Of a stretch of 64,000 bases of DNA, positions 11,351 to 55,623 are shown one piece after another. The stretch's first letter is position 1. Each line of letters starts with the position of its first letter. The position numbers and the translations under genes are program-made. Location of the stretch: positions 541,465 through 605,464 of the forward strand of contig RHPI01000560.1 of the NCBI GenBank assembly GCA_009103225.1, written 5' to 3'. Origin of the DNA: Chlorokybus atmophyticus (lineage: Eukaryota > Plantae > Mesostigma and Chlorokybus algae). A model generated the notes under the pieces. It was not told the DNA's origin. It saw nothing but the letters and a program-made list of their open reading frames with translations, and made no database searches.

Positions 11351-11554
11351 AGCACTGCTTTCCTTATGATAAGAACCACCAAGGGCCAAAACAATCAGTG
11401 CTTGGCACAGAGCAGCAAAGCTTTCATCTACTGCGCTTGCATGGCTAAGCGTTGGAGTGAGGGCGGCCCGTCTTAGGCGCCAGCTGGCAGCTGGTCGGCC
11501 TCATCGCAGAGGAGGGCAAGGAGGGCAAGAGGCGCTTCACCTGGGGTCAATACC

Positions 11555-14069
11555 ATGAGAGAAGAGGTGGATGTGCCGGCGAGCGCCCTCGGCAGAGTCA
11601 TTGGTAGGGGCAGCCAGACCCTTCAAAAGCTTGAAACAAACGCCGGGCATCACATCATGGACGTCAGTAATGCAGCAGGCAACTCTCTCCAACTGCCAAG
11701 GCAAGTTGGAAGAACGGCATGTTGCACACACGACAACTTGTGTAAGCTTCCCTTGTGCTGTAGCCCAACATGCAACGAACTGAGCGTGGTGCACGCTCAC
11801 TTCGTTGTCTGTCGTCGCATTGGTCTTGAAAACGACAACATTGGTAGTTAATGCTGCTCCTCCTGCAAAACTCCACAACAGGTCGTGGTGTTTACAGCAG
11901 GTGATGGTGGCAACCACGCTCATTATTGTTGCTGTTGTGCATGCAGGTGGCGATATGCGGAAGAGACAGAGAGGCGGTCGAGGAGGTTGCGGGCCTCGTG
12001 CCAAGTGGCGGGGCACGCGGAGGAGACGCGAGCAGAGCGGCTATCATCCTGAATGGGCATGCTACTACTGCTTCGATACTGCAGACACAACAGAACCATC
12101 AGCAGGAGAGGAGACACCAGCCTCCTCCTCCTTACAGCCTTCAAGTTGCATTCCGCCGCTTCAGCTCAGTGCTTAACAGAGAACTCATGCCTGAACACCC
12201 GCGCTTCACCGACAAGCAGCTTTACACTTTCCATTCAGACGCCGCAGAAGAATGTGACTACTCTCTGTACTCCAGGCAAGACTCTCTGCCAGTGGTTGTA
12301 AGCAGCTGTACTGTGTGGTATTTGTGCGCGTACAGTGATACTGTGTAGTACAGGCACACGCACAGGCTAGCGAATGCATGTACACACACTGAGAGTGCAC
12401 ACATGCGCGGCACACACGCACATGCATCCATGTGAGCGTGCACCGAAGCATGCAACAGTGCGTTACGATGCGTGCAGGTCAGGTGTGTGCGACGGTTAGC
12501 TTTTGGTGCGTGCACGTCAGGTGTGTGCCACCGTGCCGGAACCCAGAGGCTGCAGCTTTGGTGCATCTTAGCATCAGGCCGGCATTGCATGAGCCGTTGT
12601 TTGCTGCAAGAGTTATGCAGGCAAGCAAAGATGCACGAGAAAATGAAGGCCGCCGCACTCTGGCTGATGTTGTGCGCTTCGGCATAATTTATGTCACACG
12701 CCTGAGTGCGGGCGCTAGCTCTTGGAAAAGAGGTGAGTGAAAATGACAATGACATGCACGCGCGCACATTACTCTGTACATGCGTGTGTGCAGGTTGCCT
12801 ACCGTTGTATTAGTCATTGTGCAGATGTCACCGTCACAGCAGAGGAGCTCAACAGCTTCAGGATGCCCGAAGGTATTGCCTTCCGGTATATACACTACAA
12901 ACGGACTTAAAGCCCATGTGAGCAGCATACGAGACTGGCCAAACACGTAAGGGTAAACATTGCTTGTATACTTGGCTTGTCGCATACGCATGCAAGCACG
13001 GACGCACCCGCATCCGTGTGCACACAAACCGTGACGTACATGCACATGCATGTGCTGTGTTGTGTCATACATACATGTATTGGGCTGTAAGTGCAGGCAT
13101 TATGAGGCTACAGGCCACCAACGCTCGGTGTCTGTACATATGACTTTTCATCAAGCGTCGCCACAGAAGGCGTTGAAAGTGATGTTAGCTTGTTCGGGCG
13201 AAGGCGACGATGCAGACATCATTGGCTGGCATGTCGAGCAAGGAAGGTGAGCTGGCAGTGCGCCACAGCCATGTGCATCACGTGCAACATTTGACTCGCA
13301 CCAGAGTGTGCGCCAAAATGCACTCACACGTACGGGCATGCTTAAACACAGTTCCTTGTTTGCAGACACCGGCAGGGCTTTCTTTCCATGGTACAATCCG
13401 ACGACTTGCCAGACTCTCGCATAGCCCTGGAGAAAAAACAGTCAATGGTAAGTTACGGCAGCAGCAGCAGCAGAGCCGACTGTAACCTCATGGCATGCTT
13501 GCAGTGGGGCATGCCCCACATGATGTGCGTATCTGCACTGATAAAAGTGCGTAGCAAAATGCCTTTTTCGGGCAGCTTCATGAGGCTGCAGAGCTGAAAG
13601 ATTACGTAGTGGATGCCTGCAATCACCGCTCCCGCGCCGATGGGTATCTCCGCTGTTAATCAGGCCATGATTGGTATCACGTCCACTTTGTGCGACACAT
13701 CATGAAGGAGGAATGCTTTGCAAAAGGGCCTTTGAAGGTCTACCTGATACAAGTTACCTCGGGCACAGCAACCAACGGTGATGAAGTGCAGCAGTACTTG
13801 TTGTTAGCTGGTGTTGTCATCATCAATAATGTACTCGTTGTTGTCGTTGTTGCTGTTGTTGTTGTGGTTGTTGTTGTTACTGTAGTTGTTGCTGTTGTTG
13901 TTGCATCCAGTAGCGGCGTGTGCCCGAGCAGGTGACCTGGGAGTTTGAGATCAAATCAAGCCTCCCGAGAACCCTGGCGGATGTCGGTGGTTGCGAGGAG
14001 GATGTCCAATGTGCCTTGCATGAGCTAGCTGCGGAAGGCTGGAGGCTAGCGCTGGCCATGAGCACTTGA
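11555..14069 (+). pseudogene. KH-domain + uncharacterised domain gene, multi-exon, frameshifted
   Basis: KH signature EVDVPASALGRVIGRGSQTLQKLE...VAICGRDREAVEEVAGL, then exons FRRFSSVLNRELMPEHPRF, RFGIIYVTRL, HYEATGH, GQLHEAAELKD, VTWEFEIK...LAMST*. Several frameshifts and stops relative to the paralog at 53.6-55.6 kb. Confidence 0.78.
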
Positions 14070-14699
14070 GGGGATCCAGGCCACTCTTGTCATTGAATGT
14101 CCAGTGCACAGAACATTGGACAAGGGGGGCAGTCGCTTTTATGGAGGCTCGGTATAGTAGGACTGTTGTCACAGTCGACTGCGATTGTAGCTGATGTGCT
14201 TTTACCATAGGGAGTAATTGATGCAACTCACGTGTAGCAAAGCAGCACGGAAGAACGGCCTAGCGACCACCACCAACAACAACAACAACAACAACAACTT
14301 CTTCTCACGCTGAACTCAGGGCGCGGTGAGCGTCGCTGCATGCGCGTCAGTTGTACGCTGCTGCATTAGGCGAGCCTCAAATACGTTGGTCATGTCAAGT
14401 GCGTTGGTAATGCGCATGTGGTCATGATGTTCATGTGACTACCGGTATGAGGCCAACGCAGGGCACTTTAGTACTTGGTAATACGGTTGCACTCGGCGAT
14501 GTCAATTCATTTCGTACAACTTGCTGTACCCTGCTTTACAGCTTACAGCGTGATGTAAGTTACATGATGTGACTTGAGTCGCGTTTGCGCGTGATGTAAT
14601 GTGATTGACGCTTGCGTGATTCGAGTCGCATGATGTGACTTACATCACGCACTGCGCCTGAAGTCGACTCCAGACGCACGCGCTCAGCAGCGCTCACCG

Positions 14700-15830
14700 G
14701 AGACATCTCCGGCGCCCATCTCCTTTTTAAGCGCTGCTGCGAGTGCGTCTGGAGAACGCCCCTGCATCCGTTGGTATTGTTGACGTCGTTGTTATGCTGC
14801 TGCTCCTGTTGGACAGTGCTGCTCCAGCCGGCGTACCTGGCGTACCGTGTGAGCTGGAAGTCGTGCTGCGGCAAGCACTGCTGCCTAAAATCGAGGATTG
14901 AAAGAGGATTGAAAGGAAGACAAGCACCTGCAAGTGGGGAGTAAGGTTACGCCCTTTTGTTTGACTGTGCAACGGAGTGCAGGTATCTGCACTGGAAAAC
15001 GCAACACAACCAGGACACACAGCATGCATTACGTTTTGAGCCACGTGTGCTTGGATGGCGTGTCTAATGTTGCACAGTGTCAAGAGACAATGTTGTACGC
15101 GAGAGGGGTGGACCTACAAAACGCGGAGAGCAATAGTGCGTGAGAGGGGCCAAGTGCACTGCCAGTAGGCTTCTTTGACTGCATGGCATTACTTCTCAAA
15201 CAGCTCAAAGCTCACATCTCATAGCTTCCGAGTACATTGTTGTTGCTCGCAGACAGTGTATGGAATCCTCAGTGTTGTGCCCATTGTACAGAACATGTTT
15301 GATTGTTTGCCATGGATCACGCTGAAACCCCGGGTGGGCCACTTCTGCCTGAACACCTTGCAAACCATTTTGCAGGCCAGGGCGGTCGGGAGGTCATGAA
15401 AGCCAGCATGGCCGCCGGCATCATTGCTGGGTTGGGCGCTGCTGCAGCAGTGCCTTCAATACTGTTGACATCTGCTGGACTTATTGGCACCACTGCAGGT
15501 GCACACCGTTGCTACACACTCTGCAACGTGCCACATCAACAATGGCATTGTTGGACACAACGGCGAAATATCATGCCTTGGCATAAAACGCCATCAGCCG
15601 CTGCATCACAAGCTCGCACTCTGCAATGTGCAGGTGGCGTAGCGATTGCAGGTCTCAAAGGCGCAGCAGCAACGACCGCTGCTTTGGCTTGGCTCGGTGG
15701 CGGGTCTGTGGCTGCGGGCGGTGGTGGCATGGCTGCGGGGCTGGCAGTGCTGTCTGCAGTGGCTTTACCGGTGGGTGCGGCAGTCGCTGTGGGATGCGTT
15801 GCATGTGTAGAGATGATGCTCACAAAGTAG
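14700..15830 (+). CDS. Gly/Ala-rich (glycine-zipper-like) putative membrane protein, copy A; 5' part uncertain
   Basis: Spliced core ASMAAGIIAGLGAAAAVPSILLTSAGLIGTTAG/GVAIAGLKGAAATTAALAWLGGGSVAAGGGGMAAGLAVLSAVALPVGAAVAVG, with a phase-1 intron at ~15498-15633 and a stop at 15828-15830. Upstream Cys-rich exon-like sequence (14700-14940) is shared with copy C. Confidence 0.6.
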
Positions 15831-16015
15831 ACCGCCGTATGGCTAGCAAAGTACGCAGTGAGTCTGTGCAACGTAGGAACTGCTGTGTTGCGAACATGCA
15901 TCCCTAGAGATGCTGTGGCTTGATACTGTGAGTGTTTTCCATGGTACACGCCCCAGGTGGGCCACTCCGGCCTGAACACCTTGCAACACCCACCTTACGA
16001 GCCATTCTCTGCAGG

Positions 16016-16430
16016 CAATGGCAATCTGGAGCTTCGTGAAAGCCAGCATGGCCGCCGGCATTGCTGGAGTGGGCGCTGCTGCAGCAGTGCCTTCATTACT
16101 GTTGACATCTTCTGGACTTAATGGCACGACTGCAGGTGCGCAATGTTGCTGCACACTCTGTACTGTGCATTGCTGGTCAACGGCTTATTGTTATCACGCC
16201 GTGCATCCTAAGCTCAAACAACACTGCACTGTGCAGGTGGCGTGGCCATAGCTAGCCTCAAAGGTGCAGCAGCAACGACCGCTACTTTGGCAGGGCTGGG
16301 GGGCGGTCCTGTGGCTGCGGGCGGTGGTGGCATGGCTGCAGGGCTGGCAGTGCTGTCTGCAGTGGCTTCGCCGGTGATGCGGCAGTTGCTGTTGGAGTAG
16401 CAGCTGCATCTCATGCTGAGAGATGATGCT
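16016..16430 (+). pseudogene. Tandem copy B of the Gly-zipper gene, frameshifted
   Basis: Repeats aaagccagcatggccgccggcatt...gcaggtgc intron ...gcaggtggcgtggccatagctagcctcaaaggtgcagcagcaacgaccgct; a deletion after ccggtg disrupts the end. Confidence 0.75.
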
Positions 16431-17199
16431 AAGGTAGTGCGTGGGAGCAACTCTTGAGTGTCAGTGTGCGGCTAGACGACATACGCAGCGGGGCTGCTCA
16501 CTATGCTCACCCATTAAACTGTACGAACTTTCACAAGGAGTAAGCTCAGTAGTTGCCATCACGCAAAAGCATGTGGACATTAGCACACGCAGTACACAAC
16601 CTGCCAGTGACCTGCATGTTCTATGAAGCTTTTCGGCCTGCACCCTCTTGAACTAGTTTATGTTAGAGGAGCTAGGTTTACAGAGATGCTGTGGCTCAAT
16701 ACTCAGTCTTGCCCTGTGCATGTGTACAGAAAATGCATGTGATGTGTGCCACACGTGTACTCTGTGTATGTGTGACACATAGAGTGCATGCATACACGTG
16801 CACTGTTTTCTCTCGCATGCTCATACATCAAAAACCAGACGACTAGCCTTTCCTGCACCAGTCTTGTGACGTATGGGTTCTATGCTACTAGATACAATTA
16901 CAATGCTCCTCACTGCGACATGGTCATTCCAGTGACTGACCCCGCAGTGCATCATGGGCAGAGCTGCATGCGCTATAGGCTTGATAGCCCTAACGTAGCT
17001 ATCCGAAAGCTTTGAGTTAAGTTGAAATATTTGGCAAATGATTCAACTGGTCTGTTCCCACGGACAAAGCAAGTACTAGTGCAGGCGCTGTGCTGGCGCC
17101 AATTCAATTCAAGGGAGGGCCTGGCAAATTGGACCAGGAGCTGAATTTTGACTCCCCCCCCCCGCGCTTCCTCCTTTAAGCCACAGTTGGGCTGCGCTC

Positions 17200-19536: not shown

Positions 19537-19605
<69 letters not shown>

Positions 19606-19880
19606 ATCACCAAGGTGTTAGCGGTGATGTAGGTAGTGAGTTAGCTGATGCAATGGTTATGTCCGGTGGTCAAGTATGTATTGAGAGCTGCCTGCTGCCC
19701 TGCCCATGCATGATACGCATGGGCCATTCCACTGCGCATTATCTGTACATACACAGCCGATGTTTGTGTGCGTCTCTTGTCTATTACAGGCAAAGAGAGA
19801 AAGGGTTAGAGAGTAAGCTGCAGTGCCGCACGAACCTGCACCGCAGCAAGGTGCGGTGGCGCCTCCATTAGCGGCGCGAC
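17200..19880 (+). pseudogene. Second decayed segmental copy of the PUS locus and its 3' flank
   Basis: 17221-17310 matches PUS exon 3; 18168-18250 matches exon 4; gagaggagcaggagg (~18484) matches exon 6; 18980-19060 matches 7310-7400; 19812-19880 matches 8002-8090. Order and orientation are the same as the source. Confidence 0.75.
19264..19536. other. Assembly gap (N run) followed by (TG)n to 19604
   Basis: Directly visible. Confidence 0.99.
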
Positions 19881-20278: not shown

Positions 20279-23200
20279 ATGCCTATGCTCCTCATTCATG
20301 CCGGCGTCCTGGTGCTTCTCCTCTGCTCCATCACTCGCGTCACAGCAGCAGCGGTGGCGGCGGCGGTGCCAGCGGCCGGAGCGGACCAGGAGCTGTTTGC
20401 GTGGGGACGCAATGCTGAAGGACAGGTTGGCAAATTGCTGTTTTTGACGTAGTCAAGTTTCAACGTCATCATACTCGGCGATCAGTTGAGAAAGTTCGAG
20501 CTTTTGAATGGAACAGAGCATGAATCATTTATTCAAGTTTACGGTTTGCTTCCACTTTGAGCACAAAGCGCGTGTGTCGGCATGCTCTGCAACAGCCACC
20601 ATTGTCAGCACTCCCGCTGCATTGGTGCTATCGATCAGATCACGGTCATCGACATTCATGCATGGGCTTACAGCTGATGGACCTGTTGCGTGCAAGCACA
20701 ACATGCACACACGCACCCACATTATAGACGGAAAGGGGTCACTGATGATGCACCCAGAGTTACTTGTAACATGCAGTGCATACAGACTTGCGGTATAGCG
20801 TTACATATTGAGTGTCCTTTCCATGAATCAACACCACTACAGCTGACAGTAACCCTTTTTCCAATAAGCACAGCATTTGACAATGAACACAGTGCAATTT
20901 GTCCATGCAATTCATCTACCACCTGTCTAAGCAGCTCAGTGTAACACAACTCTTCATCACCTTACTATCCCGTAGACAACAATTTGACCAACTCACTTTC
21001 TTCTGTGCCCTTTGTTGCTTCACAGCTAGGTGTCTCCGACCGCGTGGACCGTTTCCTCCCCGTGCCCGCCTCGGCCCTCCGCGGGCACCGCGCGAGGGCG
21101 GTTGCGTTGGGTGCCGCGCACGCTGTGGCCGTCCTCGACAACGGCGGCAGCAACAACAACGCCGGTGGTGGGCGAGCGTGGAGCGCGGGGGCTGATGATG
21201 CGGGGCAGCTCGGGAACGAGGGGAGGAGCGGCGATGGAGGTGCGCTTGCACCGGTTGAGGGTATAGAGGGAATTGTGGCAGTTGCTGCGGGGGAAAAGCA
21301 CTCTGTTGGATTGTCCGCCGATGGAGAGGTATGCTGGGACAGTGCGTGTGTGAACCATGAGAGTGAGTGTGAGTGTGAGTGTGAGTGTGAGTGTGAGTGT
21401 GAGTGTGAGTGTGAGTGTGAGTGTGAGTGTGAGTGTGAGTGTGAGTGTGAGTGTGAGTGTGAGTGTGAGTGTGAGTGTGAATGTGAGTTTGATTGTGCGC
21501 ATGCAAATGTCTCATACTCTCACACACAAACAGATGTGTGTGCATGCGCATGCATGCATGTGTGTGCGGAGCGGGGGTATGAAACAGCAAGAGCGTGAGC
21601 AAATGTACCTGCGAGCAAGCAAGCATGCGAGCAAGCATGCATGCGTGCGACTGACCTGGGGTGCACATGCAGGTGTATGTGTGGGGTGGAAACGCGCAGG
21701 GGCAGCTTGCGCTGGACCCGGCGAGCACCGCAATGCTGTCAACGCCACACAGGCTGCGTATCACAGCCGCAACGTCCAAAGTGATTGGTATGCAACGCGT
21801 ATCAGGCCTGGAAGCAACAACAGCACGGTCGCCGACTGGCTGACTCATCACAGGTGTATGTGCGGGAGCAAACCACTCGCTAGTGTGGACTCAGGAAGGA
21901 GAGCTCTTTGCGTGGGGCGCCAACTACAACGGGCAGCTTGGAGTTGGGGACAAGAAAGCCCACTATGAGATCATGCGCGTGGCCGATGCTGACCCCGTGC
22001 GACAGGTACTAACTGGTGGAATGGACCTGTGCACAAGAGCCACTACATGTAATCACTCTGACTAACACAGGCTGCATGCGGAGGCCAACACTCCCTTGCC
22101 CTCACTACCAATGGCAAAGTGTATGCTTGGGGGCGCAACCAAGCTGGCCAGCTGGGCTTGCAATCCATGATCAACTCCCAGGTCAATATATGTACACACG
22201 CACACAAATGCACACTAACACACATGTGCACACACAGGCACATATGTGTACATGAATGTTTATGCACATGCATGCCTGTCCACACACATACACTTACCAT
22301 CATGGTGTATGTATATGTATGCTCACGTACGTAAGCAAACATCCGATCAGGATCGGTTGTTGCCGGAGTTGGTGCCACGCTTTACGCCCGCAGCAGTGCG
22401 GCGTCTGGGTGCGGGCCAGTCGTTCTCGCTGGCGTTCTGCGAGGACGGCGCGCTGTGGGCGTTCGGGGACAACAGCGAGGGGCGGCTCGGCACGGAGGGG
22501 CCGGATACTAGAACGAGTGCGACACCCATGCAGGTGGCAATGGGAGGCGTGGCTGTGAAGGATTTTGCGTGTGGGCGGCAGCATGTTGTCGCGCTCGGGG
22601 CTGATGGGAAGGTAACAATGCCCTGTGCCCCTACCAACGCAGATGCGTTTGGTGTCAAATGCGGTTAAAGTGGGAACTCCCCTGCTAGATATACGCGTGG
22701 GGCGCCAACAACGTGGGCCAGTTGGGCGTCGGGGACACTCTGCCCAGGATGAAGCCGACACGAATCCGCTCTTTTGACTCCAGCCACGTACACAATACCC
22801 TACACACTCTCCACTTAAGCTCATGGTACACCTACATTAACCTTACCTCTCCTCAGGTGGACTTTGTGAGTGCGGGGGAGGACTCCTCCCTGGCAGTCAT
22901 GTCAACTGGCGCTCTCTATAGTTGGGGTGGAGCAGCGGCCGCCAGCATTGCCGTCACTGGCGTCGAGGCCAGTAGCAACAACAGGGGCGGGCGCAGCAAA
23001 CCAACTCTGGCATTGCCACCACAGGATCGTAGCCCCATACTAGCAATCGCAGCAGGAGGGTATGCGCACGCGTATGGCGGACACAGCTTGGCGATCACTG
23101 CAGAGGGATCGCTATATGCTTGGGTGAGGCCTTTGGCAGTAACAATCTTGTCTCTTCGTAAGATTTTCTGATTGATGTGGTTAGCAAACCACAAGTTCAT

Positions 23201-24911
23201 CCGCAACAACACAGGGATGGAATGCGCACGGGCAGCTTGGTGTTGCCCCTGTGGAGGACAGCGATGGAATACGAGCGACCCCGAAGAAGCTGCGCTTAAA
23301 TGGCGTAAGGACAATCGCATATGCTTGTAGTTTCAATCGTAGCAAACAAAAATGTTGCACAGCTCACAGAGCATACCTGTTTTTGTCCCAGGCCAAACTG
23401 GGAAGGGTAGCAGCAGGACAGTCGGCAACAGCAATTTTGACAGAAACTGGCGAGGTGTACACGTTCGGAGCAAACGAGTTTGGTGTCCTTGGGAGAGGGG
23501 ATTTCCGACCACAAGATCTTGGCAAGGGCCCAAAGGACGTCCAAGTTGACGGGTACCAAGTCATTGAGATGTGTGTTGGCTACGGACACATGCTGGCACT
23601 CACGTCAGAGGGCAGGGTAAGCTACATGTGGAAGGATGTGTGCATGTTTAACCCCTCGACACAAGCTGGCCATCATGAGTGACAGATGTGGACACAACAA
23701 TTGTGTCGAAGCTGACCACAAACTGGGATGGCAGGTGTACTCTTGGGGACGCAACTTTTATGGGCAACTCGGACACGGTGACCACAGGTAAAGAGCTTGT
23801 TGGCGCTGCTTGTCTTTGTTGTGCACTTTGAAAAGAGATGGCACCTTTGACAAAGGCCGTAAGTGCAGCCAGCGAGAGTAAGCTAAATCCTGCCACAACA
23901 ACACCGAAACGCATGCATCTTATGAGTTCCCAACAGCACAACTTACTCAGGGACCGAGCTGCACCGGCACTGGTGGCCTACCTGACAGAGGAGCGCATTG
24001 CGACAATCGCAGCGGGACAATACCATTCGATTGCCATAACTCGAGACGGCAGAGCTTTCACATGGGGTTACAACCGCGACTACGAACTCGGCCTAGGTCA
24101 GACTCACTCTTTGCAGTCGACTTGCTGCATGCACGTTACTGCAGAGTGTCAACCAACCAACCTGCGAATGCGCACAGGTGACAATATGGACAGAGTTTTG
24201 CCTCAGGCAGTGCCTGGGTTGGAAGGCAAAAAGCTAGTTGCAGCTGCGGCTGGCGGATACCACTCCTTGGTTGTTACCGATGACGGGAGCATGTTCGGGT
24301 TTGGCCTGAACAACTACGGGCAGGTGAGAGAGCGACTAGTAGGCACAACCCACATATTCAAGCAAAGTAAGAGTTCACTACTCACAAGGAAGTCATGAAC
24401 ATGTGCGCAGGTTGGAGGTCCATACGAAAAGTCCTTTGTGAAAACACCATCATCAGTGCCAGTAGCTACCGACAGCCAACATGGGCGATTGGCAAGCAGG
24501 CATTACAAGGTGTGTCACATGTGTGCATGAGCAACTGCGCATCAGGCTGACCTGCTTTTGTGTCATAAAGGTTAAGGCAGTGTCCGCTGGCACATGGCAC
24601 TCGCTCGCTGTCTGCGAAGATGGAGAGCTATTCGCTTGGGGTCGCTGTGACTCCGGCCAGCTCGGGTTGATCGCTTGCACAGGAGACAACGTGCAAGCCC
24701 ATGTTGAAGTACCCACACGGGTAAGCAGCTTACTTTCTGACAAAGCACTATACTTCACAGCACGAGGGCTGCATTGGGAAGCCAACTTCACCCAATTCAC
24801 GCGCAGGTGGAAGAACTGCAAGCACACAAAGTGTTGATGGCAGCAGCTGGTGCTGCGCATTCCCTTGCTGTAGTGGATGGACAGTTAAGACTTCAACAGC
24901 AAACTCATTAA
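20279..24911 (+). CDS. RCC1-repeat (beta-propeller) protein with 14 repeats and an N-terminal signal-peptide-like segment
   Basis: N-terminus [29 protein letters not shown], then [149 protein letters not shown]. These alternate with AAGxxHSLA half-blades. GT-AG splicing keeps the frame; stop TAA at 24909-24911. Confidence 0.92.
21357..21490. repeat. (GAGTGT)n hexamer microsatellite inside an RCC1 intron
   Basis: Directly visible. Confidence 0.95.
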
Positions 24912-32100: not shown

Positions 32101-32754
32101 ACCAACTGCGCTTCGGGGACCACTGCGTCAACGTCCAGCGACTTGGTGATTTGCAAAAGGCCCGCAGCCTCGACCGAGGCTGCGGAAGCACACAAGTGGC
32201 GAACACACTCGCCATTGCACAGCAGAGACTCGCAGGGGTGGCCCGGGATAACGGCTGTGTTAGCAGCCTCTGCAGACTCGCACAAACCACATCTGCAGCA
32301 GCAGCAGCATGAGCACCAGTTGTTCCGAACACGCCACCGTCCAGCCATCGAAGGTGAGGACCAGATGGCGTTCGAGATTGAAAGCACACATGATGACGAT
32401 CGCAACAACAGCCACAACATGGCAGCTATGCCGAAGAATTTCTCTTCAACATCCTTGTGCTCGTCGCACCCATTGGTGGCGGGTATGAACCACTGCGATG
32501 ACGATGTGGAGAACCCGCGGAGCCCGCACCCACCTTATCAGCACGCGACGCACACAAGCAAGCACAAAAAGCACCGTGGGTGGCTCGCACGCATGAGGCG
32601 GATACGCGCGCTCGTGCATGAAGACTTCGACTCTGCGCTCGAGACTGTCCACCAACTGGACGTCATCAGCCTCCTCATCCTACCTGTCTTGTATATTGCG
32701 GCCACCATACTCACTTTCACGCTCGATCATGAGCGAGCGAGCTATTCGGATTGA
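29173..32754 (+). CDS. Cys-less (Pro-loop) pentameric ligand-gated ion channel, paralog A, 11 exons
   Basis: Signal peptide MRMEGRLLCLLVLKLLALVVSG; IYVSFYLDRLIAVDDHQYIFEAVTYVRFSWIDTR; CCDR-IWLPGTNFRN; GVYYTPMSFRNFPFDRQSLVL; M1 YYVYNIILPMSICVALSWITFLL; M2 DTRLQIVVTLFLALTAMQFVVNDQLPKSSYIT; M3 VVISYAAISVVGLEGLAVYYL; M4 LDVISLLILPVLYIAATILTF. Splicing stays in frame. Confidence 0.93.
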
Positions 32755-39089: not shown

Positions 39090-39460
39090 ATAGTTGACAC
39101 CATAGTGTCAACTGTCAACTTGTAACATCACCTTCGTAGTAGTTGATACTATGGTGCCAAAAACCACAAAGATGATGCTTCATATAGCATCATCTTTGGC
39201 TGGTATATCAATTACGCATAATGTGGATTACAATATTCCCCTGGATACAAGCTCCCTTGCGTATAAAGATGGGGGGCTTATATATGTAGCATCGTCTTTG
39301 TAGTTGTGGACACTATGGTGTCCACTACTACAAAGACGATGCCACATAGCATCATCTTTGCCTGGGATATTAATTACGCATAATTTGGTTTACAATATTC
39401 CACCGGATACAAGCTCCCTTGCGTATAAAAAAATGGGGTGCTTATATATGTATTACTTGT
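39090..39460. repeat. AT-rich tandem duplication (~170 bp unit) built from hairpins; probable non-autonomous mobile element
   Basis: tagcatcatctttg...aattacgcataat...tacaatattcc...ggatacaagctcccttgcgtataaa...gcttatatatgta occurs twice. A 25-bp stem hairpin lies at 39289-39342. Confidence 0.75.
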
Positions 39461-39563: not shown

Positions 39564-39564
<1 letters not shown>

Positions 39565-39659
<95 letters not shown>

Positions 39660-42975: not shown

Positions 42976-45900
42976 TCAACTTGGGTAGCTCCCCTGCTCA
43001 TGGTTAAGCACGAACGTGAGAATTGCGGCGCCAATGTAAAGTACTGGCAGGATAAGCAGGCTGAGAAAGTCCAGACGGTTGACCGTCTCAACCGCAGTGC
43101 CAAAGTCTTCATGCACAAGTGTACGTATGCGCATCATACGCGTCAACCACCCGCGGTTCCTGTTCTTTGCATCTGAACAAGAAGCAGGGTTTTCAACATC
43201 GTTGTACCCGTCCTCACCCTTGCTATTGTCGCCGCACATGCTGCTGTTGTTCAGACCCGCCGTAGATGAATGTAAAGAGACCAGCAACGGTGCCGACAAA
43301 TTCTTCGGGACGACTTTTGGTCTGTTGTGGCTGTTGCTGTCGTCGGTGTTGTGGTTATTGTTGTCGTGGTTGTTGCTGTCGTGGTACTGGCTGTTGTTGA
43401 AATCGCCATCTTCACCATGGCTTGCAGGATGAGGTCTTAACCTTGTCTCGCCCTCCGCAACGAGCCCAGGCTGCTGCTGCTGCTCATGTCCGTCTGGCGC
43501 TATACATGATGGCCGAGCCGACACTGCTGAGGGCCATCCATGCTCATGTGTCGATGACGACAACAGCGATGGTGAGTTGGCTTGCCATGGAGGGGTCACA
43601 GTGGCCACCAAGCCGTTTGTTGACGCATTGACCTCAGAGCTGAGCTCCCTTGCTTGTCGGCGAGTCGAGCTCGCCTGCCTCGCTCTCCTGTACACGCGTG
43701 GTAAGGACAGTTTATAAATAAGATAACACGACTGCATTTGTGGCAAATCCAGCAGTCGCTGTTTAATGCTGTTTAAGACACAGTGCAGGATAGGAGACAT
43801 GCAGCAAAGCATGGCAGTACACAGCTCAACACAATGTACATGCGACATCCGTCCAGTTTCAAGTGAGCTGGGGCGTTGCGTGAGCGTTAACTGGCCATTG
43901 CGTGCAAGGGGGGCATACTTGCTCAGGGCGGAGGTCTGCACGAAGAGGGTGCCAATAGAGCGGATGGTGTTGGCGGCGCCTGAGGCGGGGTTGGTGATGT
44001 ATTTTCTCGTCAACCTTCGCCGGTTCAACGCAGCGGCCATCGCCTCTGCGGCGCTCCTCTTGCGCTTCCTCCTGATGTCCTTGCGGGTAAGGTAGTAAAC
44101 AGCGAGGCCCTCCAGCCCCACAACACTGATGGTGGCATATGAGACGACAACCTGGACAGTGAGGACGTTGATACGTAGTCATCACCAGCAACAGCTTGAG
44201 GAACAGACAACACGCACTCGTGCTTGCGCACAGGCACACGTACTCATAGACTCAGTTCACAACGGCACCTGGATGTGCAGTGCCGTAATGTACGACGACT
44301 TGGGCAGCTGGTCATTCACAACAAACTGCATCGCTGTCAACGCCAGGAACAACGTCACCACAATCTGCAGCCGCGTGTCCACATGCTCCTGCAAGCATAA
44401 TTCAAAGGCGGATGTGTACAAATGCCAGCAAGCTGCGCACAGTCTGGAATTATGTTTCAAGACAATGCAGGCACCACAGTATGCGCAGGTTGGTTGCTCA
44501 GAATATGATGCTATGTGTATCTTGTGCACTGCAAGAGTGAGCTACAGTTGCTGGGTCGTGGTTGTAGTGATCAGCAATCAAACAGGTACCCGCTAGGGTA
44601 CGCACTGGATGTGCTTACCATGTCATGGACTACTATATGTTGCCCTGTTCAGTGTTGTGCTCAGGTACATGACAACTGCTGGTCATGCCCAAAGGTACAG
44701 TCTGTTATGGCTGTGATAAGATATGCCACCAATCTAAACCAGCAATCACGCTGCCAACAGCACACGTGACATTGTGTCCAACCGCACAATGACCCAGTCA
44801 GTCACGCGATACTAAATACACTTTTTGGTACTCACCCTTGCAGCACATATGCACAAGACCATTGACAGCACTCACCGCAGATAGGAAGAAAGTAATCCAG
44901 GACATGGACACGCAGAGGCCCATGGGCACGATGATGTTGTAAACGTAGTAGGACGATAACCGCGACACCTCGATGGTGATGACAAAGTTCGGGTAGAAGA
45001 ATGGTGGCATCCCCGCCTCAGGCTTCAGAGGCAGCGGGTCCTCCGGATGCGAGAAGGTCCCGTACTGTGGGGTTTACAACTCTTGTAAGAGCAGTAGAGT
45101 GATAGCTGGGGTTGCAACACCAGGTCACAACAACACACCTCAAGCGTAACAGCCAGGGAGCGATTGTACGCATCCGTGCTCACGCTCTCCACCATCCAGC
45201 TGGAAAGGTCATTACCCCTACGTTCAATTACATCCTCACCGACCTGCAAAGAACAAGCGCATGAGATTGGTGAGAGCAAAGAGAGCCACAGCCATACACA
45301 CAATGGGTAATCAATCTGAACATAATCTGTTTTGATGCAACGGTGCGGCTGTCGATCGCACCTTTGAGCCAATGGAGGATGCAATGTAGGGCGCACGATG
45401 ATCAATGGCCTCCAGTGATATAACAAGGCTCTGTTTGTCGAATGGGAAGTTGCGAAAAGACATCGGCGTGTAGTAGACACCTGTAACAATTACACCTCAT
45501 TGAACAACCCACAATGATGACGTACTCCACATCACTGACAATATCACTATCATTGTTGCCATCACCATCGTCATCATGGTATACACCTACCATGGAGGAC
45601 CTTCAGCCATTGCACTGCGGAGTTGTTAACTCCGCCAACAGTCACAATCTCTGACTCTGTGCGACCATCGGGAAAAACATACGCATTGCGGAAGTTGGTG
45701 CCTGGCAGCCATATCTGCATGGAATGAGAATGGTAGTGAGAGATGTATGCGCTGAAGCTGTTGGAGACATCATGATGCAAACACATCCCACACTTGACAA
45801 GGCCAAACCTTGTCGCAACAAGAGGCCTGTGAGCTGCCTGAATCGGGCACAAGCGTTTGGCAAGGGCGGGTACACGACGCGATGTCAGTCTCATCAACGG

Positions 45901-46941
45901 GGGTGACCAACGCCGCAGCTGTTGAGCAAGCCAGTGGGTTAACAACTATTGGAAAATCTGTGGACAGCTGTATGCAATTTAAGGGCATAATCACAACTGA
46001 CCTCTGGTGTCTATCCAGCTGAAGCGTATGTATGTGACGGCCTCGAAAATGTACTGGTGATCTGCATATATGCATGTGTCTTGTTGGTCCGCAGTGTAAT
46101 GGTACGTCTTCAACCTGTGTGCTCTTACTCATGCGCTATCACATTACCGTCTACGGCTATAAGCCGGTCCAAGTAAAACGTAACGTATATTGGTGAGAAT
46201 TCTGTGGGAGGGACACCCTGCGCCTGGAACGGGACCGAAACCTGGAAGGAAAACAAGCTGCAGCCACTCACTTCTTCCAACACTGTATAGCATGTGATCG
46301 ATGTAGTGACTGTGGTAGTGTTTACAACCAAGAACTCACAACCCATGCGATTGAACTGTAAATGCTGAGTACACATCATGTGATTGCATAGGAAGTGTGG
46401 TTGTACATTCAGCTCACAGTGCTCAACGTACTGTGCTTGCATGCCATGTCCGGTACACAAGTGTCATGAAGAAACCTGCATGAATATATCTTGACACTCT
46501 TTCATTTGTTTCGTTCACTTTGCATTAGCTCCCATGCAAATTAGGGTTTGTAGCATGCAATATATATCTTGACACTCTTCCGTTTGTTTCGTTCACTTTG
46601 CCTTAGCTCCCATGCTGAGTAGTTCGTAGCATGAGCATGCCATGCTCAACTGTGCCCACAGTTGATCATGGCAGACCATGTGCCGGAACAAACACCACTC
46701 GCTGCACCACAGTGCAACCACTGAATGGTGACACAATGGCTTCAACTCAAGACCATGACAAGCAGAAACTGGCAAGCAAGCACGTCAAGCAGTTGCCAGC
46801 GCGCATTTGCTGCTTGCTGCCATGCTGAACCCAACTGCCGCTGGCAGCGCAGCTCACCTGCGCAAGCGCCACAGAGCTTGACAGCAGCAACGACAGCGAC
46901 AAGAAGGTCAACCTCAAGCACCGCAGCCCCCTGCCCGCCAT
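42976..46941 (-). CDS. Cys-less (Pro-loop) pentameric ligand-gated ion channel, paralog B, 11 exons
   Basis: Signal peptide MAGRGLRCLRLTFLSLSLLLSSSVALAQ, with the same exon set and phases as paralog A: SPIYVTFYLDRLIAVD, DHQYIFEAVTYIRFSWIDTR, CCDK-IWLPGTNFRN, GVYYTPMSFRNFPFDKQSL, YYVYNIIVPMGLCVSMSWITFFLS, EHVDTRLQIVVTLFLALTAMQF, LDFLSLLILPVLYIGAAILTF. Stop TGA at 42976-42978. Confidence 0.93.
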
Positions 46942-49260: not shown

Positions 49261-50450
49261 TCAGCAGTCTAATGTCTTAGCGTGTAACGCAGCTGCTACT
49301 CCAACAGCAACTGCGGCACCCACTGGTAAAGCCACCACAGATAGTACTGCCAGCCCCGCAGCCATGCCACCACCGCCAGCAGCAACAGGACCACCCCCAA
49401 GCCATGCCAAAGCAGCAGTCGTTGCTGCTGCGCCCTCCAGGCTGGCAATGGCCACTCCACCTGTAGTGCAGAGTGCAGTTGTGATGCATGGCGTGATGAC
49501 AGGTAGCCGTTGTCCAACAATGCACATTGCAGAGTGTGTAGCAACGGTGTGCACCTGCAGTGGTGCCAATAAGTCCAGCAGATGTCAACAGTAATGAAGG
49601 AACTGCTGCAGCAGCGCCCACGCCAGCAATGACGCCGGCGGCCGTCCTGGCTGTCATAGCCCCCCAGATTGTCATCGCCTGCAATAAATCTGTTTTCAGG
49701 AAGCTCGCAAGGTACTACGTGTTGCAGGGCGAAGTGGCCCACCCGGGGTAAGCGTGTTCCATTGCAAACACTCACTGTGTTGTGAACGTGCAAAACGCTG
49801 AAGACTTTGTCTACGAGCAACAATGCACTCAAGAGCTAAGCTATGTTGTGAAAGCCGTCATGCACGGTAGGAAAGGTCTTGGTCCCTGACTAGCAAATTC
49901 AGTCAAGCTGTGAAATGTCTGAAGTAGTCTTGAAGCAGTCATGCCACGCTGTCAGAAAAAGCCAATGGCAGTTCACTTGGGCCATATCTCTTGCCGTTAT
50001 TGAATGTGTTCTGTACGTGTAGGTCACCTGTGTGCGGCACACAAAGTATACCTCTTTACACTGTGCAACATCAAAAACGCCAGCCAAGTGCATGTGGCTC
50101 ATTACATAATGCACGCTCAGCTTTGTGTTCGCGCGTCCAGTGCACATACCTTTGCTCCGTTGCAGCCAGTCAAACGAGAAGGAGTACCTTACTCCCCACT
50201 TGCAGCTGCGCGTCTCCCTCAGTTTCTCTGGAAGGCAGCCGAGCTTGCCGCTGAACGATTGCTACCTCACACTGTGCGCCTGGCAGGCCAGCTAGACTGG
50301 ACTGGACAGCACTGTTGAGCACTGACCAGCGGAGCAGCAGCGCAACAACAACACAAACGAAGGTATGGGCGTACTACATACGCACGCCCAGCAGCGCTCA
50401 ATGGGGCAGGCTCCACGCCGGAGACTTTCCCAGACCCAGTGAATGCTGAC
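49261..50450 (-). CDS. Gly-zipper-like membrane protein, copy C; core intact, 5' part uncertain
   Basis: TAAGVIAGVGAAAAVPSLLLTSAGLIGTTAG/GVAIASLEGAAATTAALAWLGGGPVAAGGGGMAAGLAVLSVVALPVGAAVAVGVAAALHAKTLDC*, with the same intron position as copy A. Confidence 0.6.
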
Positions 50451-51869
50451 ACAGGGAGGGCGTACATAGTACGCTAGTGCGTGATGAAATTTCGTCACGC
50501 AATCCCGCAAGCGTCAAAGCAGTGATCGTCACGTCACATCACAAATCACAACTAATAAATCTACCGAGTGCAGGACCAGTGTACCCTCCCGCGTTGGCCT
50601 CACTTGAGAATTAAATTACTTGACGTGACGAACGCAATCTAGGCTCGCATAATGCACCAGCGTTAGGGCTGGGGCCGAACCTAGGTTTGAGCATGACCGA
50701 ACGAACTAGAACAGGAACCTGAAACTTATCGTTACTTTCAGGTTCATATGACCTTATTTTGCTCTTGCAAAACAATACAAGCGACATTCATGAGTGACAG
50801 CGACCGAACCATCGAGATAACGAATAAACATACGAACAAAACCTTTAAGAGAACGTACATAAATTCTACCATGAGGCATACATTTATCAACACGACTACA
50901 TGCATCATCCAACACAAAGCATTGCATAATTAATGGCATGTACTTTGCCACACAATATGTATATGAAAGCATGTATTGGACATTGATATGGCGTCGAGCC
51001 ACGCTGTGTCACGTGGTACGTAGAGTAATGCATCAATACAGCGTAACTATGCGTGGTATTGCGTGACAGCAAAAGGTTCGTTCTCGTTATGCGCCATGCA
51101 TACATAACGAACTAAGAATGTTCCTTCAACCCTGATTTCGTTCTATTTTTTGACTATAAAGGTAGGAACGAACAAAGAACATTCTTTGTTCATGCTATGT
51201 GACACAATACAATGGCTATGTCCCAGCTCTAACCGGTGTACAATTGTACGCATGCAGCAACGCTCACTGCACTCTGAGTTTCGGGAGAAGTTTGTGGTGG
51301 TGGTGATTATGTTACTAGGCCGCGTCTCCCGTGCAGCTGGCCCATTAGCCTCAGTAGCCGTCTGGGGTAAGCTGTCTTTCTATCGTGCTGCTGACGGTTA
51401 AAACCAAGTAGCAAAACTTGAGTTTGTACACAAAATGTGATGTGGGGTGGTGCATGCATAGTACATGCACATGTGTGTTGTACTGCATGCAACACTGTTG
51501 AACTGTGCACCGCTTCCCGTTTTTAGCTACTTGCCAATGGGTGATTGCTTTGTTGTTGCGTGCGACACACGCTTGGATCTGTCATCACGTAGCGATGTCA
51601 AGGTTTCGGTTCGGTCTGCATTAGCCTGATTTTATGACAAATGCATAAGTGCTTGGGCATGCTGCTATTGGCCTCGCCTCTCAAGTGGCCCTTGGCATGG
51701 TCGTATTATCGATGAGCAAGCGTGCTGATCGTCACAATGAGGTGGTCGCTCAGCAGTGCTACACTCCAATTAAGCTAGAGCAACAGCCACAACTACCGCG
51801 CTCCCATGGCCGAAACATTGGCATGAAGCTGAATGCACCTAAAGGCCGCCATTCCTGCTCGTCAACTGG

Positions 51870-51965
51870 TTATTATTGTCACGGAGGGCCGGAGGGAAAG
51901 GCGCGTCAGCTTAGTGAGGTTAGAGGTGGATGTGCCTGCGAGCATCGTTGGCAGAGTCATTAACA
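51870..51965 (+). pseudogene. Isolated KH-domain exon fragment
   Basis: LEVDVPASIVGRVINT. The nucleotide sequence agaggtggatgtgcc.gcgagc..c.t.ggcagagtcatt matches 11562-11603, and upstream 51745-51830 matches 11395-11460. Confidence 0.75.
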
Positions 51966-52320
51966 CAGATGCCACAACGTGACATCGACCGTAACCAAGT
52001 AGTGCACTGGCGCAGACTTTCTTGCAACTAGCCGCTCTTGCAGGTGACAACCGTTCGGAAAGAAACATGACGTGGTGGCTTACAGAGCGCTCAACATAGC
52101 AAAACCTAAAAGCAAAAACAGAGAGCTTCTACCCTAACCGGGCGTGCTGATGCTTTGCTGAAGCAGCAACAGCAACAGCTCTTCGTATTCTTGCGCTGCA
52201 ACGCAATGCTTGCCAAAGAAGTCACGACTGGTCCCCGGCTGAGGCAAGTGTGAATGCCACTCTGCACAACAAGAACCTTATCTAATATAAGTCAATGGAG
52301 GCAGCAACAATCATCCATAC

Positions 52321-52414
52321 AAGTCCATCATGGCCCTTGCGGCAGGCTTGCCGCAAGGGCCATAATGGACTTGCCTTAATGGACTCGCCTTAATGGACTC
52401 GCCTTGATGGACTT
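52321..52414. repeat. GC-rich hairpin followed by 14-bp tandem repeats
   Basis: aagtccatca-tggcccttgcggca-ggct-tgccgcaagggcca-taatggactt, then (gccttaatggact)x3. Confidence 0.9.
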
Positions 52415-52781
52415 GTATGATACGTGCCCCTTGTCGCTGGCCTCAACCGGGTTGTCACTCCACGCGTATCGCAACATCAAACACGATGTTAGTGGCATGT
52501 CTGTCAATAGGCTAACGGGACCCCCACAATGTATGGTGCAACGTATGCGGTGACACAAGCGCAGGTTGGTTGGCACGTGCATTTCAACACACAGCAGCAT
52601 TGACTTTGTACAGTTAAACTTTTACTGTACAGAGTGTGCACACAATAATATGATAGCATGCATAGCTGCCTGCCCAGTAACAGACATATTCCCCCGCTAA
52701 GAGACTTCGCTTCAAGAGAATAACCCCGTTTATAGCATAGAATGTGAGATTGCCAATGGTTTTACAGGCAAATTTTGGTGC

Positions 52782-53139
52782 TTAAGAGAATATGACTAAC
52801 CGCGAAGAGCATTTTTTATTTTCATAAAATTCTTGCAATCTTGAGTGTGCATATTCCCAACTTTAAGGGAGGATACGTGACGAGTGTCGCATAAGGCGTG
52901 ATGAGCGTGACAATTAGGGCGTGATGGGCAAAATGTGACGCGCAACCAGCGTGATGGGAGTAACGGTGCAACGGGCGCGACGTAATGCGCGTGACGTAAT
53001 GGGCGTGATGGGCGTGATGAAACCGCGTTTACAGCATACTTATGCTCTTGACATCCAAAAGCATATTATGCTCGTAAATGCCGAGAGAATTACCCCGCGC
53101 AGAGCATAAGATAGCGGAGGATAAACAGTATGCTCTTAA
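52782..53139. mobile_element. Possible MITE bounded by TTAA
   Basis: TTAA|gagaata ... tatgctc|TTAA, with internal GAGCATA/TATGCTC motifs in both orientations and a gcgtgatg repeat array. The TIR is short and imperfect. Confidence 0.35.
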
Positions 53140-53234
53140 AGGGGGTAGACTGTACACAATGTGATACACCACACTGGTTCCAATCGCAGTCCACCTTGGT
53201 CGCAGTCACCATGATAACAACTGTACCACACTTT

Positions 53235-53236
<2 letters not shown>

Positions 53237-53286
<50 letters not shown>
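53237..53286. repeat. (TA)n microsatellite
   Basis: Directly visible. Confidence 0.97.
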
Positions 53287-53288
<2 letters not shown>

Positions 53289-53364
53289 AGCCGCTGCCAC
53301 CACCGTTGTTTCACTCGTCTGTGTTCTAGACATCCGGCTGGAAACAAGAGTGGTCTAAACCTCC

Positions 53365-53803
53365 TCACGTGCTCATGGTCAGCGCTAGCCTCCAGCCTTC
53401 CGCAGCTAGCTCACTCAAAGCGCCTTGGACATCCTCCTCCGCGCAGTCACTGGCCTCTGCCAGGGTTTTCAGCAGGTTAATTTCGATCTCGATCTCCCAG
53501 GATACCTGCGCGGTGTGATGCGTTTATACACACCTTTGCCCACCGTTGTCCATGTTCTGTGCACTAGACATGCAATGACAAGAGTGGTCTAACACTCCTC
53601 AAGTGTTCATGGCCAGCGCTAACCTCCAGCCTTCCGCCGTCAGCTCATGCAAGGCGCCTTGGACATCCTCCTCGCTACCACCGGCGTCCGCCAGGATTTT
53701 AGGCAGGCTGAATTTTATCTCTTTCTCCCAGGTCACCTGCTTGGGCACACGCCGTGTGTGCATGCAAGCGTGCATGCACAAACCAAAACATGCAGCAGCA
53801 ACG

Positions 53804-53836
<33 letters not shown>

Positions 53837-55623
53837 TTCATGCAGCAATGATAACAACAACAACGAAAACAACTACTACTGATGCATTTCATCACCGTTG
53901 GCTGCTCGTTGGTTGCTGTAATTGAGGTAACTTGTGTCAGGTAGACCTTCAAAGACCCTTTTGCAAAGCATTCCTTCATGATGTGTCGCTAAGCGGACGT
54001 GATACCGGTCGTGGCCTAAAGGTTTGAATCGGAGATACCCGTCGGCGCGGGACCGGTGGTTCCAGGCATCCAGTACACAGTCTTTAAGCTCCGCAGCCTC
54101 ATGAAGCTGCCCAGAATAGACAATTTGCTGCGCACTCTGAACAGCACAAAAATGCACGGTTTGGGGCATGATGCCCCACCGCATGTATGTGTTACGGTCG
54201 GCTCTGCTGCTATAAACTCACCATTGCATGTTTGATCTCCAGGACTATGCGAAAGTCTGTCAAGTCATCAGATCGTAAGAAGGAAAGAAAGCCCCGCCGA
54301 TGTCTGCAAAATTGAGACATGTATCAGCATGCCCATACGTGTGAGTGCATGTTTGTGCATTATGTGGTGCGATCGAAACATTGCACGTGATGCACATGAA
54401 TGTGGCGCACTGCCAGTTCACCTCCCTTTCTCAGATTGCCAGCCAATAACGTCTGCATCATCGCCTTCGCCTGAGTAAGCAAGCTTTACTTTAACGCCTT
54501 TTGTGGCGACGCTTGACGATCGTTCATATGCACAGACACTGAGTGTTGTGGACTGTAGCCTCATAATGCCTGCAGTTCCAGCTCAATACATGTAAATGTG
54601 ACACAACACAGCACGTGTATGTACATGTGTGTGCGCATGCAGGTGCGTCCATGGTTGCATTGCATACGCGGCAAGGCCAAAGTGTACATGCAATGTTTAC
54701 CCTTACATGTTTAGCCAGTCTCGAATGCTGCTCACATGGGCTTAAAGTCCGTTGGTAGTATACTGGAAGGCAATGTCTTTGGGCAGCCTGAAGCTGTTGA
54801 GCTCCTCTGCTGTGATAGTGACATCTGCACAACAAACACAACGGTGAGTAGGCAACCTGCACACATACATGTACAAAACTACGCGCACGGGCGTGGTTGC
54901 GTGTCATCAAACCCACCTCTTCTCCAAGAGCTCGCGCCCGCACTCAGGCGCGTAAAATAAGTCTTGCCGAAGCGCAACATCAGCCGAGTGCGGTGGCTTC
55001 CACTCTCTCGTGCATCTTGCATTGCCTGCATCACTTTTGCAGCAAATAACGGCTCATGCATTGCCGGCCTGATGCCAAAATGCACCAATGCTGCAGCCTT
55101 CAGGTTCCGGCATCGTAATCTGGCCGTGGCGCAGCCACCTGACCTGCACGCATTGTAACCTGTTGCATGCTTCCATGCACACACACATGGATGCATGTGC
55201 GTGTGTGCCGCGCATCAGCGTGCACTCATTGTGTGTGCATGCACCTGTACTACACACATTATGACTGTACACGCACGCTTCAAGCAGCTGTACTGTGGTG
55301 ATTGTGCATGTACATGACAATACAACCACTGGCAGAGAGTCTTGCCTGGAGTAAACAGAGTAGTCACATTCTTCTGCGGCGTCTGAATGGAACGTGTAAA
55401 GCTGCTGTTCAGTGTGGCGAGGGTGTTCAGGTATGAGTTCTCTGGTAAGCACTGAGCTGAATCGCCGGAATACAAGGCTCTGAGGAGGAGGCTGGTGTTC
55501 CGCCCCTGTCGTTGGTTCTATTGTGTCGGCGGTTTTGAAGCAGTAGCATGCCCAGTCAGGGTAGTATCCCTCTGCTCGTGTCTCCTTCACGTGCCCCGCC
55601 ACTTGGCGCACGAGGCCCGCAAC
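53365..55623 (-). pseudogene. Inverted paralog of the uncharacterised domain of the KH gene, lacking KH, with a tandemly duplicated last exon
   Basis: VAGLVRQVAGHVKETRAEGYYPDWACY...FRRFSSVLTRELIPEHPRH, LMLRFGKTYFTRL, TTNGL*AH (in-frame TAA where the left copy has AAA), RRGFLSFLRSDDLTDFRIVLEIK, VTWEKEIK...LAMNT* (53599-53736), and a second last exon VSWEIEIE...LTMST* (53365-53505). Confidence 0.8.

Follow-up and report, generated by a model that had tools for sequence, protein, structure and literature searches.

A 64,000-nt stretch of the nuclear genome of the streptophyte alga Chlorokybus atmophyticus (assembly GCA_009103225.1, contig RHPI01000560.1, forward-strand positions 541,465 to 605,464; hereafter the window, numbered from its first letter) raises the question of whether genes found side by side in a mirrored arrangement form a functional unit or share only a history of rearrangement. 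In the first-pass annotation of the window, an accessory module made up of a KH-domain gene and Gly-zipper membrane-protein genes was described as present twice in inverted orientation, once next to a GBP-family GTPase, and the three components were proposed to act together as an algal immune, possibly antiviral, system. A system of this composition would have been an algal immune locus of a novel type. Analysis of the window, which has a GC content of ~52% and intron-containing genes, indicates that the region is probably a local inverted, palindrome-like segmental duplication and not a functional three-component module, with the Gly-zipper genes as the only elements clearly constrained in both arms.

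The inverted repeat itself is real. Mapped by self-BLAST of the window, with the arms aligned in MAFFT, it joins 11984-16917 (+) to 55625-48940 (-) at 66-80% identity (E = 0 to 1e-15, far above chance), in agreement with the extent originally given for it (11985-16945 on the forward strand against 55623-48900 on the reverse). Its largest component, block 1, pairs 11984-14131 (+) with 55625-53537 (-) over 2.2 kb, at 79.6% identity over aligned columns in MAFFT and 77% in BLAST, and is followed by block 2 (66-71% identity), by a Gly-rich block (15240-16424 versus 49823-49175, 75-79%) and by a 3' flank block. The Gly-rich segment of the left arm is further doubled in tandem (15300-15820 versus 15929-16430, 74%). 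The spacer, said to align between 14350-14650 and 50480-50660, retains weak colinear traces (14355-14400 versus 50663-50618 at 83%, and 14605-14760 versus 50517-50368 at 64%) and no full colinear alignment, while the insert of about 2.5 kb ascribed to the right arm is present at much the same size. The non-genic parts of the repeat are as follows:

14727-15086 (+): duplicated block 2, from the KH gene to the Gly-rich gene; non-coding pattern, no periodicity, matching 50401-50052
16743-16917 (+): 3' flank, duplicated block, 71% identical to 49124-48940
~50664-53340 (no strand): right-arm-specific insert or scrambled segment of ~2.6 kb, with (TA)25, a 14-nt minisatellite and a relic of KH exon 1

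Nested within this repeat lies a second inverted pair, absent from the first-pass annotation, in which 29728-32744 (+) matches 46232-42986 (-) and the two members stand tail to tail:

29728-32751 (+): Cys-loop (pentameric ligand-gated) ion-channel gene, left member, with periodic exons and unalignable introns
42979-46232 (-): Cys-loop channel paralogue, right member, whose exon composite matches known channels

No single channel exon has a Pfam match, and the composite of the right-copy exons matches GABA-A beta at E 8.7e-11 and ELIC at 5e-8 over transmembrane segments TM1-TM3. Exons are 70-85% identical between the two members, with an excess of third-position mismatches, and introns cannot be aligned; the inner pair consists of two paralogous Cys-loop channel genes whose exons are constrained and whose introns are saturated. 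Read across the window, the order is mirror-colinear (KH gene, Gly-rich genes and channel, followed by channel, Gly-rich gene and KH-gene body), and the gap between outer and inner blocks differs between the arms, being ~12.8 kb on the left, where it includes an RCC1-repeat gene, versus 2.7 kb on the right. A sensitive search for arm-to-arm DNA homology beyond the two blocks returned only two weak colinear traces, and no other protein-level paralogy between the arms was found.

The repeat being the outer part of a nested duplication that includes the channel paralogues, the linkage of its genes would follow from one local rearrangement history and not from recurrent association. The left arm would hold the parent genes, namely the KH gene, a tandem Gly-zipper pair and, further in, a Cys-loop channel gene, and the right arm would be its mirror image, with a single Gly-zipper gene between the channel paralogue and a KH-gene body that is 5'-truncated and scrambled. 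The outer breakpoint would cut the second exon of the KH gene on the left and land beside the GBP remnant on the right, the whole being later remodelled by insertions and deletions. Large palindromes, such as those of the primate Y chromosome, likewise combine mirror-colinear arms, a unique spacer and uneven arm-to-arm divergence. In contrast with Y-chromosome palindromes, the arms here are ~21 kb long, diverged (66-80%) and heavily changed by indels, and arm-to-arm gene conversion is only one possible cause of their unequal divergence. A dispersed short repeat of ~45-80 nt (67-92% identity) occurs in both arms and in the GBP flank (14301-14399, 51232-51290 and 56885-56965) and is possibly a small element, either mobile or recombinogenic.

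The KH gene shows how unequal the two arms have become. Its left, plausibly parental, copy is most simply modelled with three exons encoding ~198 aa, in which most of block 1 would be intron:

11555-11662 (+): KH gene exon 1, with start codon, the first half of KH_1 (MREEVDVPASALGRVIGRGSQTLQKLETNAGHHIMD) and a GT donor at 11663; outside the duplicated block
11947-12297 (+): KH gene exon 2, an open 117-codon frame running from an AG acceptor to a GTAAGC donor
12298-13931 (+): probable intron 2 of the KH gene, the bulk of block 1; neutral between copies, with a (GTT)n microsatellite
13932-14069 (+): KH gene terminal exon, VTWEFEIK...EEDVQCALHELAAEGWRLALAMST and stop codon, with a CAG acceptor common to both arms and in phase with exon 2

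The Pfam KH_1 domain is detected at 23.3 bits with exon 1 and, across the exon 1/2 junction of the spliced model, at a marginal 23.5 bits over profile positions 2-58 of 66, against the cut-off of 21.5. The GXXG loop is important in KH domains; here it reads I-G-R-G-S (GRGS), with Ser in place of the last Gly. Beyond the second half of the KH domain, exon 2 encodes a low-complexity linker and a conserved stretch of 50 residues (FRRFSSVL...DSLPVV), and the terminal exon, which opens at 13932 with the acceptor CAG|GTGACC in both arms and ends in ...EGWRLALAMST and a stop codon, has only a weak DUF4177-like similarity (E 0.019). Across block 1, mismatches between the arms lack codon periodicity, 10 of the 33 indels are multiples of 3 and K = 0.24, a neutral pattern that is explained if most of the block is intron. 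The ratio of non-synonymous to synonymous change (dN/dS, or omega) is lower in the conserved part of exon 2 (0.37) and in the terminal exon (0.38; Fisher p = 0.009 jointly). A search for homologues of the exons of this gene (KH-X) among 5.8 billion proteins returned only the chimeric self-model Chrsp127S01922 discussed below, and structure prediction from the single sequence reached a predicted local distance difference test (pLDDT) score of 30, too poor for a fold search; the KH gene is a small orphan. Upstream of it, direct repeats at 65-77% identity (4090-4949 versus 10374-11051, and 9898-10075 versus 11181-11349) suggest that the left flank has undergone additional local duplication.

Homology between the arms starts at 11984, within KH exon 2, and the right copy consequently has no KH domain. 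The claim that a KH domain is present twice does not hold: outside the left gene, what is left of it is a 40-nt relic of exon 1 that lies within the right-arm insert, on the strand opposite to that of the right gene-body copy, a position that indicates a scrambled right arm. The right copy is best read as a decaying, 5'-truncated duplicate, comprising:

53537-55625 (-): KH-gene body, right copy, 5'-truncated, with no KH domain and with five indels in the exon-2 equivalent
53368-53523 (-): extra tandem copy of the KH terminal exon (53283-53509 versus 53525-53740 at 77%)
51918-51965 (+): KH exon-1 relic, degenerate (LEVDVPASIVGRVIN...stop), 87.5% identical over 40 nt to 11563-11602

The GBP component is likewise incomplete. 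As first described, a GBP-family fragment does abut the right copy; it lies at the rearrangement junction, with 160 bp between it and the outer end of the repeat:

55787-56513 (-): GBP-family GTPase fragment in three exons (56513-56397, ~56213-56025 and 55945-55787)

The fragment matches the Pfam GBP model (PF02263; E 1.9e-13) over profile positions 56-166 of 264 only, and the structures of human GBP1/2/5 at E 1e-7 to 1e-5. It shares with GBP1/2/5 and with plant GBPL1-3 the switch I Thr, the G3 motif DxxG (LDTEGL, aligned to human GBP2) and, at the matching position, an LLRD motif (RD, G4-like), and its sequence ends just past the latter. The Lys of the P-loop consensus GxxxxGK[ST] is invariant. 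In the fragment the loop reads GTKRHGQS, with Gln in place of that Lys, and both the Pfam and the PDB alignments begin after it. Unlike GBPs, the fragment thus covers ~110 of 264 domain positions, carries a P-loop Gln and lacks the helical domain: no C-terminal helical domain was found, and tblastn of the annotated gene Chrsp127S01922 detected no further GBP-like segment in the window. A word search for close relatives returned only the fragment itself, and a literature search for Chlorokybus GBPs returned nothing. In the annotation the fragment is fused to unrelated pseudo-exons. The gene in question, Chrsp127S01922 (Chlat1, EukProt/JGI; 250 aa), maps to 54745-56513 (-) at 100%, and its repeat-derived 'exons' have omega of 0.59-0.77 and non-triplet indels (Fisher p = 0.28); it is a chimera of the three exons of a truncated GBP and two near-neutral pseudo-exons of the duplicated block. 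The adjacency of GBP and repeat, which occurs once and involves a crippled fragment, is best explained by the duplication breakpoint. Past the GBP fragment lies a DDT/WSD/PHD chromatin-remodelling-type gene (57000-64000, reverse strand).

The Gly-zipper genes behave differently from the rest of the repeat. They are duplicated, as the first-pass annotation held, although in three copies and not two, with a tandem pair (La and Lb) in the left arm and a single gene (R) in the right:

15396-15830 (+): Gly-zipper copy La, exons 15396-15498 and 15634-15830, 99 aa, intact
16018-16400 (+): Gly-zipper copy Lb, exons 16018-16135 and 16237-16400, 93 aa, tandem duplicate
49261-49675 (-): Gly-zipper copy R, exons 49675-49555 and 49460-49261, 106 aa from the upstream ATG, intact

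A three-way alignment shows the same two-exon structure with a GT-AG intron in all three copies, mismatches pile up at third codon positions, and dN/dS is 0.29-0.45 (La versus R 0.34; Fisher p ~1e-4 in inter-arm comparisons). The Gly-zipper genes are real genes under purifying selection and, among the genes of the repeat, the only ones clearly constrained in both arms. Comparison of dN/dS among the paralogues gives two answers, constraint in the Gly-zipper genes and neutrality in most of block 1. The pseudogenization noted in the first-pass annotation is confirmed: the right KH copy is decaying, and a 1-nt deletion in Lb alters and shortens its last hydrophobic segment, so that Lb may be a decaying copy, while La and R are intact and constrained. 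A database search returned no matching annotated protein, and the genes appear to be unannotated. Their GC content is 63%, versus 52% for the window, and their products are Gly/Ala-rich and have no match in Pfam (E up to 10) or NCBIfam and no TerB domain; NCBIfam and PHROGs yielded only weak tape-measure-like Gly-rich matches. An AlphaFold model of three helices (pLDDT 55) was too poor for a fold search. Judged from the sequence, the core would insert in membranes as hairpins and self-associate through its glycine zippers, and the assembly might form a channel or perturb the membrane. The 60-100 nt upstream of all three starts (15330-15390, 15950-16010 and 49690-49760) contain a conserved element (CCCCGGGTGGGCCACTTC..CCTG..AACACCTTGCA), better conserved than the intron, that may be a promoter or 5' untranslated region element. 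The Ifi-6-16/ISG12 family (PF06140), which consists of small hydrophobic Gly/Ala-rich membrane proteins with a GGG-containing motif, bears a superficial resemblance to these proteins; a relationship was rejected, as far as these tests reach, on the lack of a Pfam match and on hhalign comparisons with verified human members of PF06140, which gave probabilities of 3.6% for IFI27 and 0.9% for IFI6.

The relatives of the Gly-zipper proteins are bacterial. In a PADLOC search, the R protein matches PDC-M09A (PDLC04407) at E 8.7e-16 and 56.3 bits, over profile positions 98-182 of 282, and the algal proteins correspond to the hydrophobic Gly-zipper core only (...AATTAALAWLGGGxVAAGGGGMAAG...), at 93-106 aa against ~280 aa for PDC-M09A. 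A profile hidden Markov model (HMM) built from bacterial sequences only scores the algal proteins at 34-59 bits (La 58.9), against at most ~1 bit in 1,000 shuffles of each (3,000 in all), and the match is hence not compositional. The algal and unannotated metagenomic proteins have in common the motif G-T-A-x-x-G-x-A-I-x-x-L-x-G-x-A-A-T-N-A-A-L-A-W-L-G-G-G-x-x-A-A-G-G-G-G-M-A-A-G, and the bacterial relatives themselves match PDC-M09A at E 1e-49 to 1e-73. An exhaustive profile search returned 4,320 representative clusters (50% identity), 2,808 of them at E <= 1e-10, for a family that is typically ~280 aa long and has no Pfam model. On this sequence evidence the algal Gly-zipper proteins are true homologues of PDC-M09A, and the defence flavour of the original proposal survives in them, although not in the three-component module. 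A literature search returned no paper on eukaryotic relatives.

In bacteria, the family belongs to a two-gene cassette. A partner of ~480 aa adjoins the bacterial homologue in all six sampled contexts (6/6), and of the three partners that were scanned two are PDC-M09B (~E 1e-200) and one, beside the family member P0032, is BnzB of Bunzi (E 8e-101), which divides the cassette into PDC-M09B-like and BnzB-like subfamilies. The PDC systems number 145, all of them candidates that were predicted from 'guilt-by-embedding' in BREX, DISARM and type I restriction-modification loci (Payne et al., 10.1101/2024.01.29.577857), and Bunzi is a validated anti-phage system with a proposed 'membrane surveillance' role and a TerB protein with transmembrane helices (Millman et al. 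2022, 10.1101/2022.05.11.491447). Longer members of the family have a PARG, ADP-ribosylglycohydrolase, Macro, TerB or zinc-ribbon domain at the N-terminus, a repertoire that hints at ADP-ribose-linked signalling in the bacterial systems. Some bacterial neighbourhoods resemble defence or mobile islands, with RelB/PIN, WYL, AAA_15/21+DUF4276, a NACHT/NB-ARC-WD40 protein and transposases. Of the four close matches confirmed in reference genomes, three are from filamentous cyanobacteria, and one of these genomes, Thainema, carries the A and B cassette, with its partner match broken by ~1.4 kb (4034-5427 on contig L012); in another bacterial contig (L003) two separate pieces, of 116 and 164 aa, make up the A gene. 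Two conceivable links between this partner and the algal locus were considered. The partner is not a dynamin- or GBP-like GTPase that could tie the family to the GBP fragment, having no P-loop and no Pfam domain, and the KH-X gene is not its counterpart, as no homologue of the bacterial partner was detected in the window by tblastn with six partners (best E 0.19).

The algal proteins share with PDC-M09A the central Gly-zipper core, with a nearly identical motif (AATxAALAWLGGGxxAAGGGGMAAG). Unlike PDC-M09, they lack both coiled-coil-like arms, have no PDC-M09B partner in the window and are encoded by eukaryotic, intron-bearing genes in three copies. The tie to Bunzi runs through the relative P0032, which adjoins the BnzB homologue, and through the family members that carry TerB; in contrast with Bunzi, the algal proteins have no TerB, no BnzB neighbour and no direct HMM match to the Bunzi model. 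A conflict-related origin of the algal genes is plausible from these sequence relationships. The gene would have come from bacteria by horizontal transfer, with cyanobacteria among the close relatives, and would then have gained an intron and been amplified locally.

How much of an immune function can be read from these observations depends on which genes are considered. That the KH protein, the Gly-zipper effectors and the GBP-like GTPase co-function as a repeatedly duplicated module under birth-and-death evolution is very unlikely, even though three domain types were placed within ~5 kb in the right arm (where the copy in fact lacks the KH domain), bacterial relatives of the Gly-zipper family belong to candidate defence cassettes, and duplication and decay are both visible. 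The components meet only once, exactly at the rearrangement breakpoint; KH (left only) and GBP (right only) are never both intact in one arm; the GBP is truncated and has lost its P-loop Lys; an unrelated ion-channel gene was copied along with the rest; most of the common gene body is neutral; and the sole match of the KH-X exons is the chimeric gene model itself. The Gly-zipper genes taken by themselves make a better case, in which a bacterial anti-phage module would have supplied a partner-free immune or stress effector, for instance an inducible membrane-permeabilizing protein. Homology to PDC-M09A, the defence-island-like settings of the bacterial relatives and their fusions with TerB, PARG, Macro and ADP-ribosylglycohydrolase domains, and purifying selection with copy-number expansion in the alga all speak for this idea. 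It is nonetheless unlikely, given that PDC-M09 is a candidate only, that the membrane-surveillance role of Bunzi is a proposal, that the algal proteins lack the coiled-coil arms and have no partner gene in the window, and that a housekeeping membrane role is equally possible for a small hydrophobic protein. PDC-M09A homology and purifying selection do not, as sequence-level evidence, show immune function in the alga, and the chances that the Gly-zipper proteins act in algal defence are low. Rather doubtful, too, is the specific proposal that a streptophyte alga domesticated the PDC-M09A/Bunzi-associated membrane core as a stand-alone permeabilizing effector in cell-autonomous defence.

Two further explanations would remove the biology altogether. 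An assembly artefact, whether a haplotype mis-join or a fold-back chimeric read, could be suspected from the N-gap at ~8.65-8.85 kb and the long microsatellites in the window, and is scarcely credible: artefactual palindromes have near-identical arms, while those observed here share only 66-80% identity, contain numerous indels and differ in their inserts, and the repeat does not include the gap. Bacterial contamination or spurious low-complexity open reading frames (ORFs) might similarly account for Gly/Ala-rich, GC-rich Gly-zipper ORFs that the search, as far as it sampled the annotated Chlat1 proteome, did not find there. These ORFs, however, lie between intron-containing algal genes, are interrupted in all three diverged copies by a GT-AG intron at one and the same position, show a third-position substitution bias and match the bacterial family in a way that the shuffle controls exclude as compositional, all of which makes this explanation highly improbable. 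The preferred account, a local inverted duplication with a mirrored channel pair at its core, has points against it as well. Its age signals differ, with unalignable channel introns on the one hand and K = 0.24 in block 1 on the other, and saturation of the former beside the latter implies either two successive events or later arm-to-arm gene conversion of the outer block; a single-event origin of both inverted pairs is hence unproven. Splice signals, reading frame and conservation are the only basis of the gene models, both the three-exon one for KH and those for the Gly-zipper genes; the membrane topology of the Gly-zipper proteins is predicted from sequence with a structure model of low confidence, and PDC-M09 itself is still a candidate defence system. 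Genes were sought in the 64-kb window, and further copies or an intact GBP may lie elsewhere in Chlorokybus.

The remaining features of the window fall outside the duplicated blocks. The RCC1-repeat gene (21800-24700, forward strand) occurs in the left-arm spacer only, and a probable TruA/PUS1-like pseudouridine synthase gene, judged by eye only, lies upstream at 3400-6500 (+). Outside the arms are also the N run that marks the assembly gap (~8650-8850), an (AG)154 microsatellite (7407-7714), a 95-nt poly-C run (39565-39659) and a 162-nt tandem duplication (39121-39452). Scans of the window for tRNA genes and Rfam families returned no matches.

The apparent three-gene module of this locus is a by-product of local inverted duplication and gene decay, and its analysis bears on the Chlorokybus annotation in two ways: one annotated gene, Chrsp127S01922, is mis-modelled as a chimera, and two or more small genes under constraint have been left out of it. 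What is new here is modest but real, and comprises stand-alone eukaryotic members of the Gly-zipper family, a mis-annotated chimera and a nested palindromic duplication. A bacterial membrane-protein family known only as a defence candidate now has eukaryotic members. If the algal genes were infection-responsive, they would represent one more bacterial defence part reused by eukaryotes and would allow the membrane activity of the family to be studied in a minimal form that has no partner. Should domestication prove true, it would be a new case of a eukaryote, here an early-diverging streptophyte alga, that has put a prokaryotic immune component to its own use.

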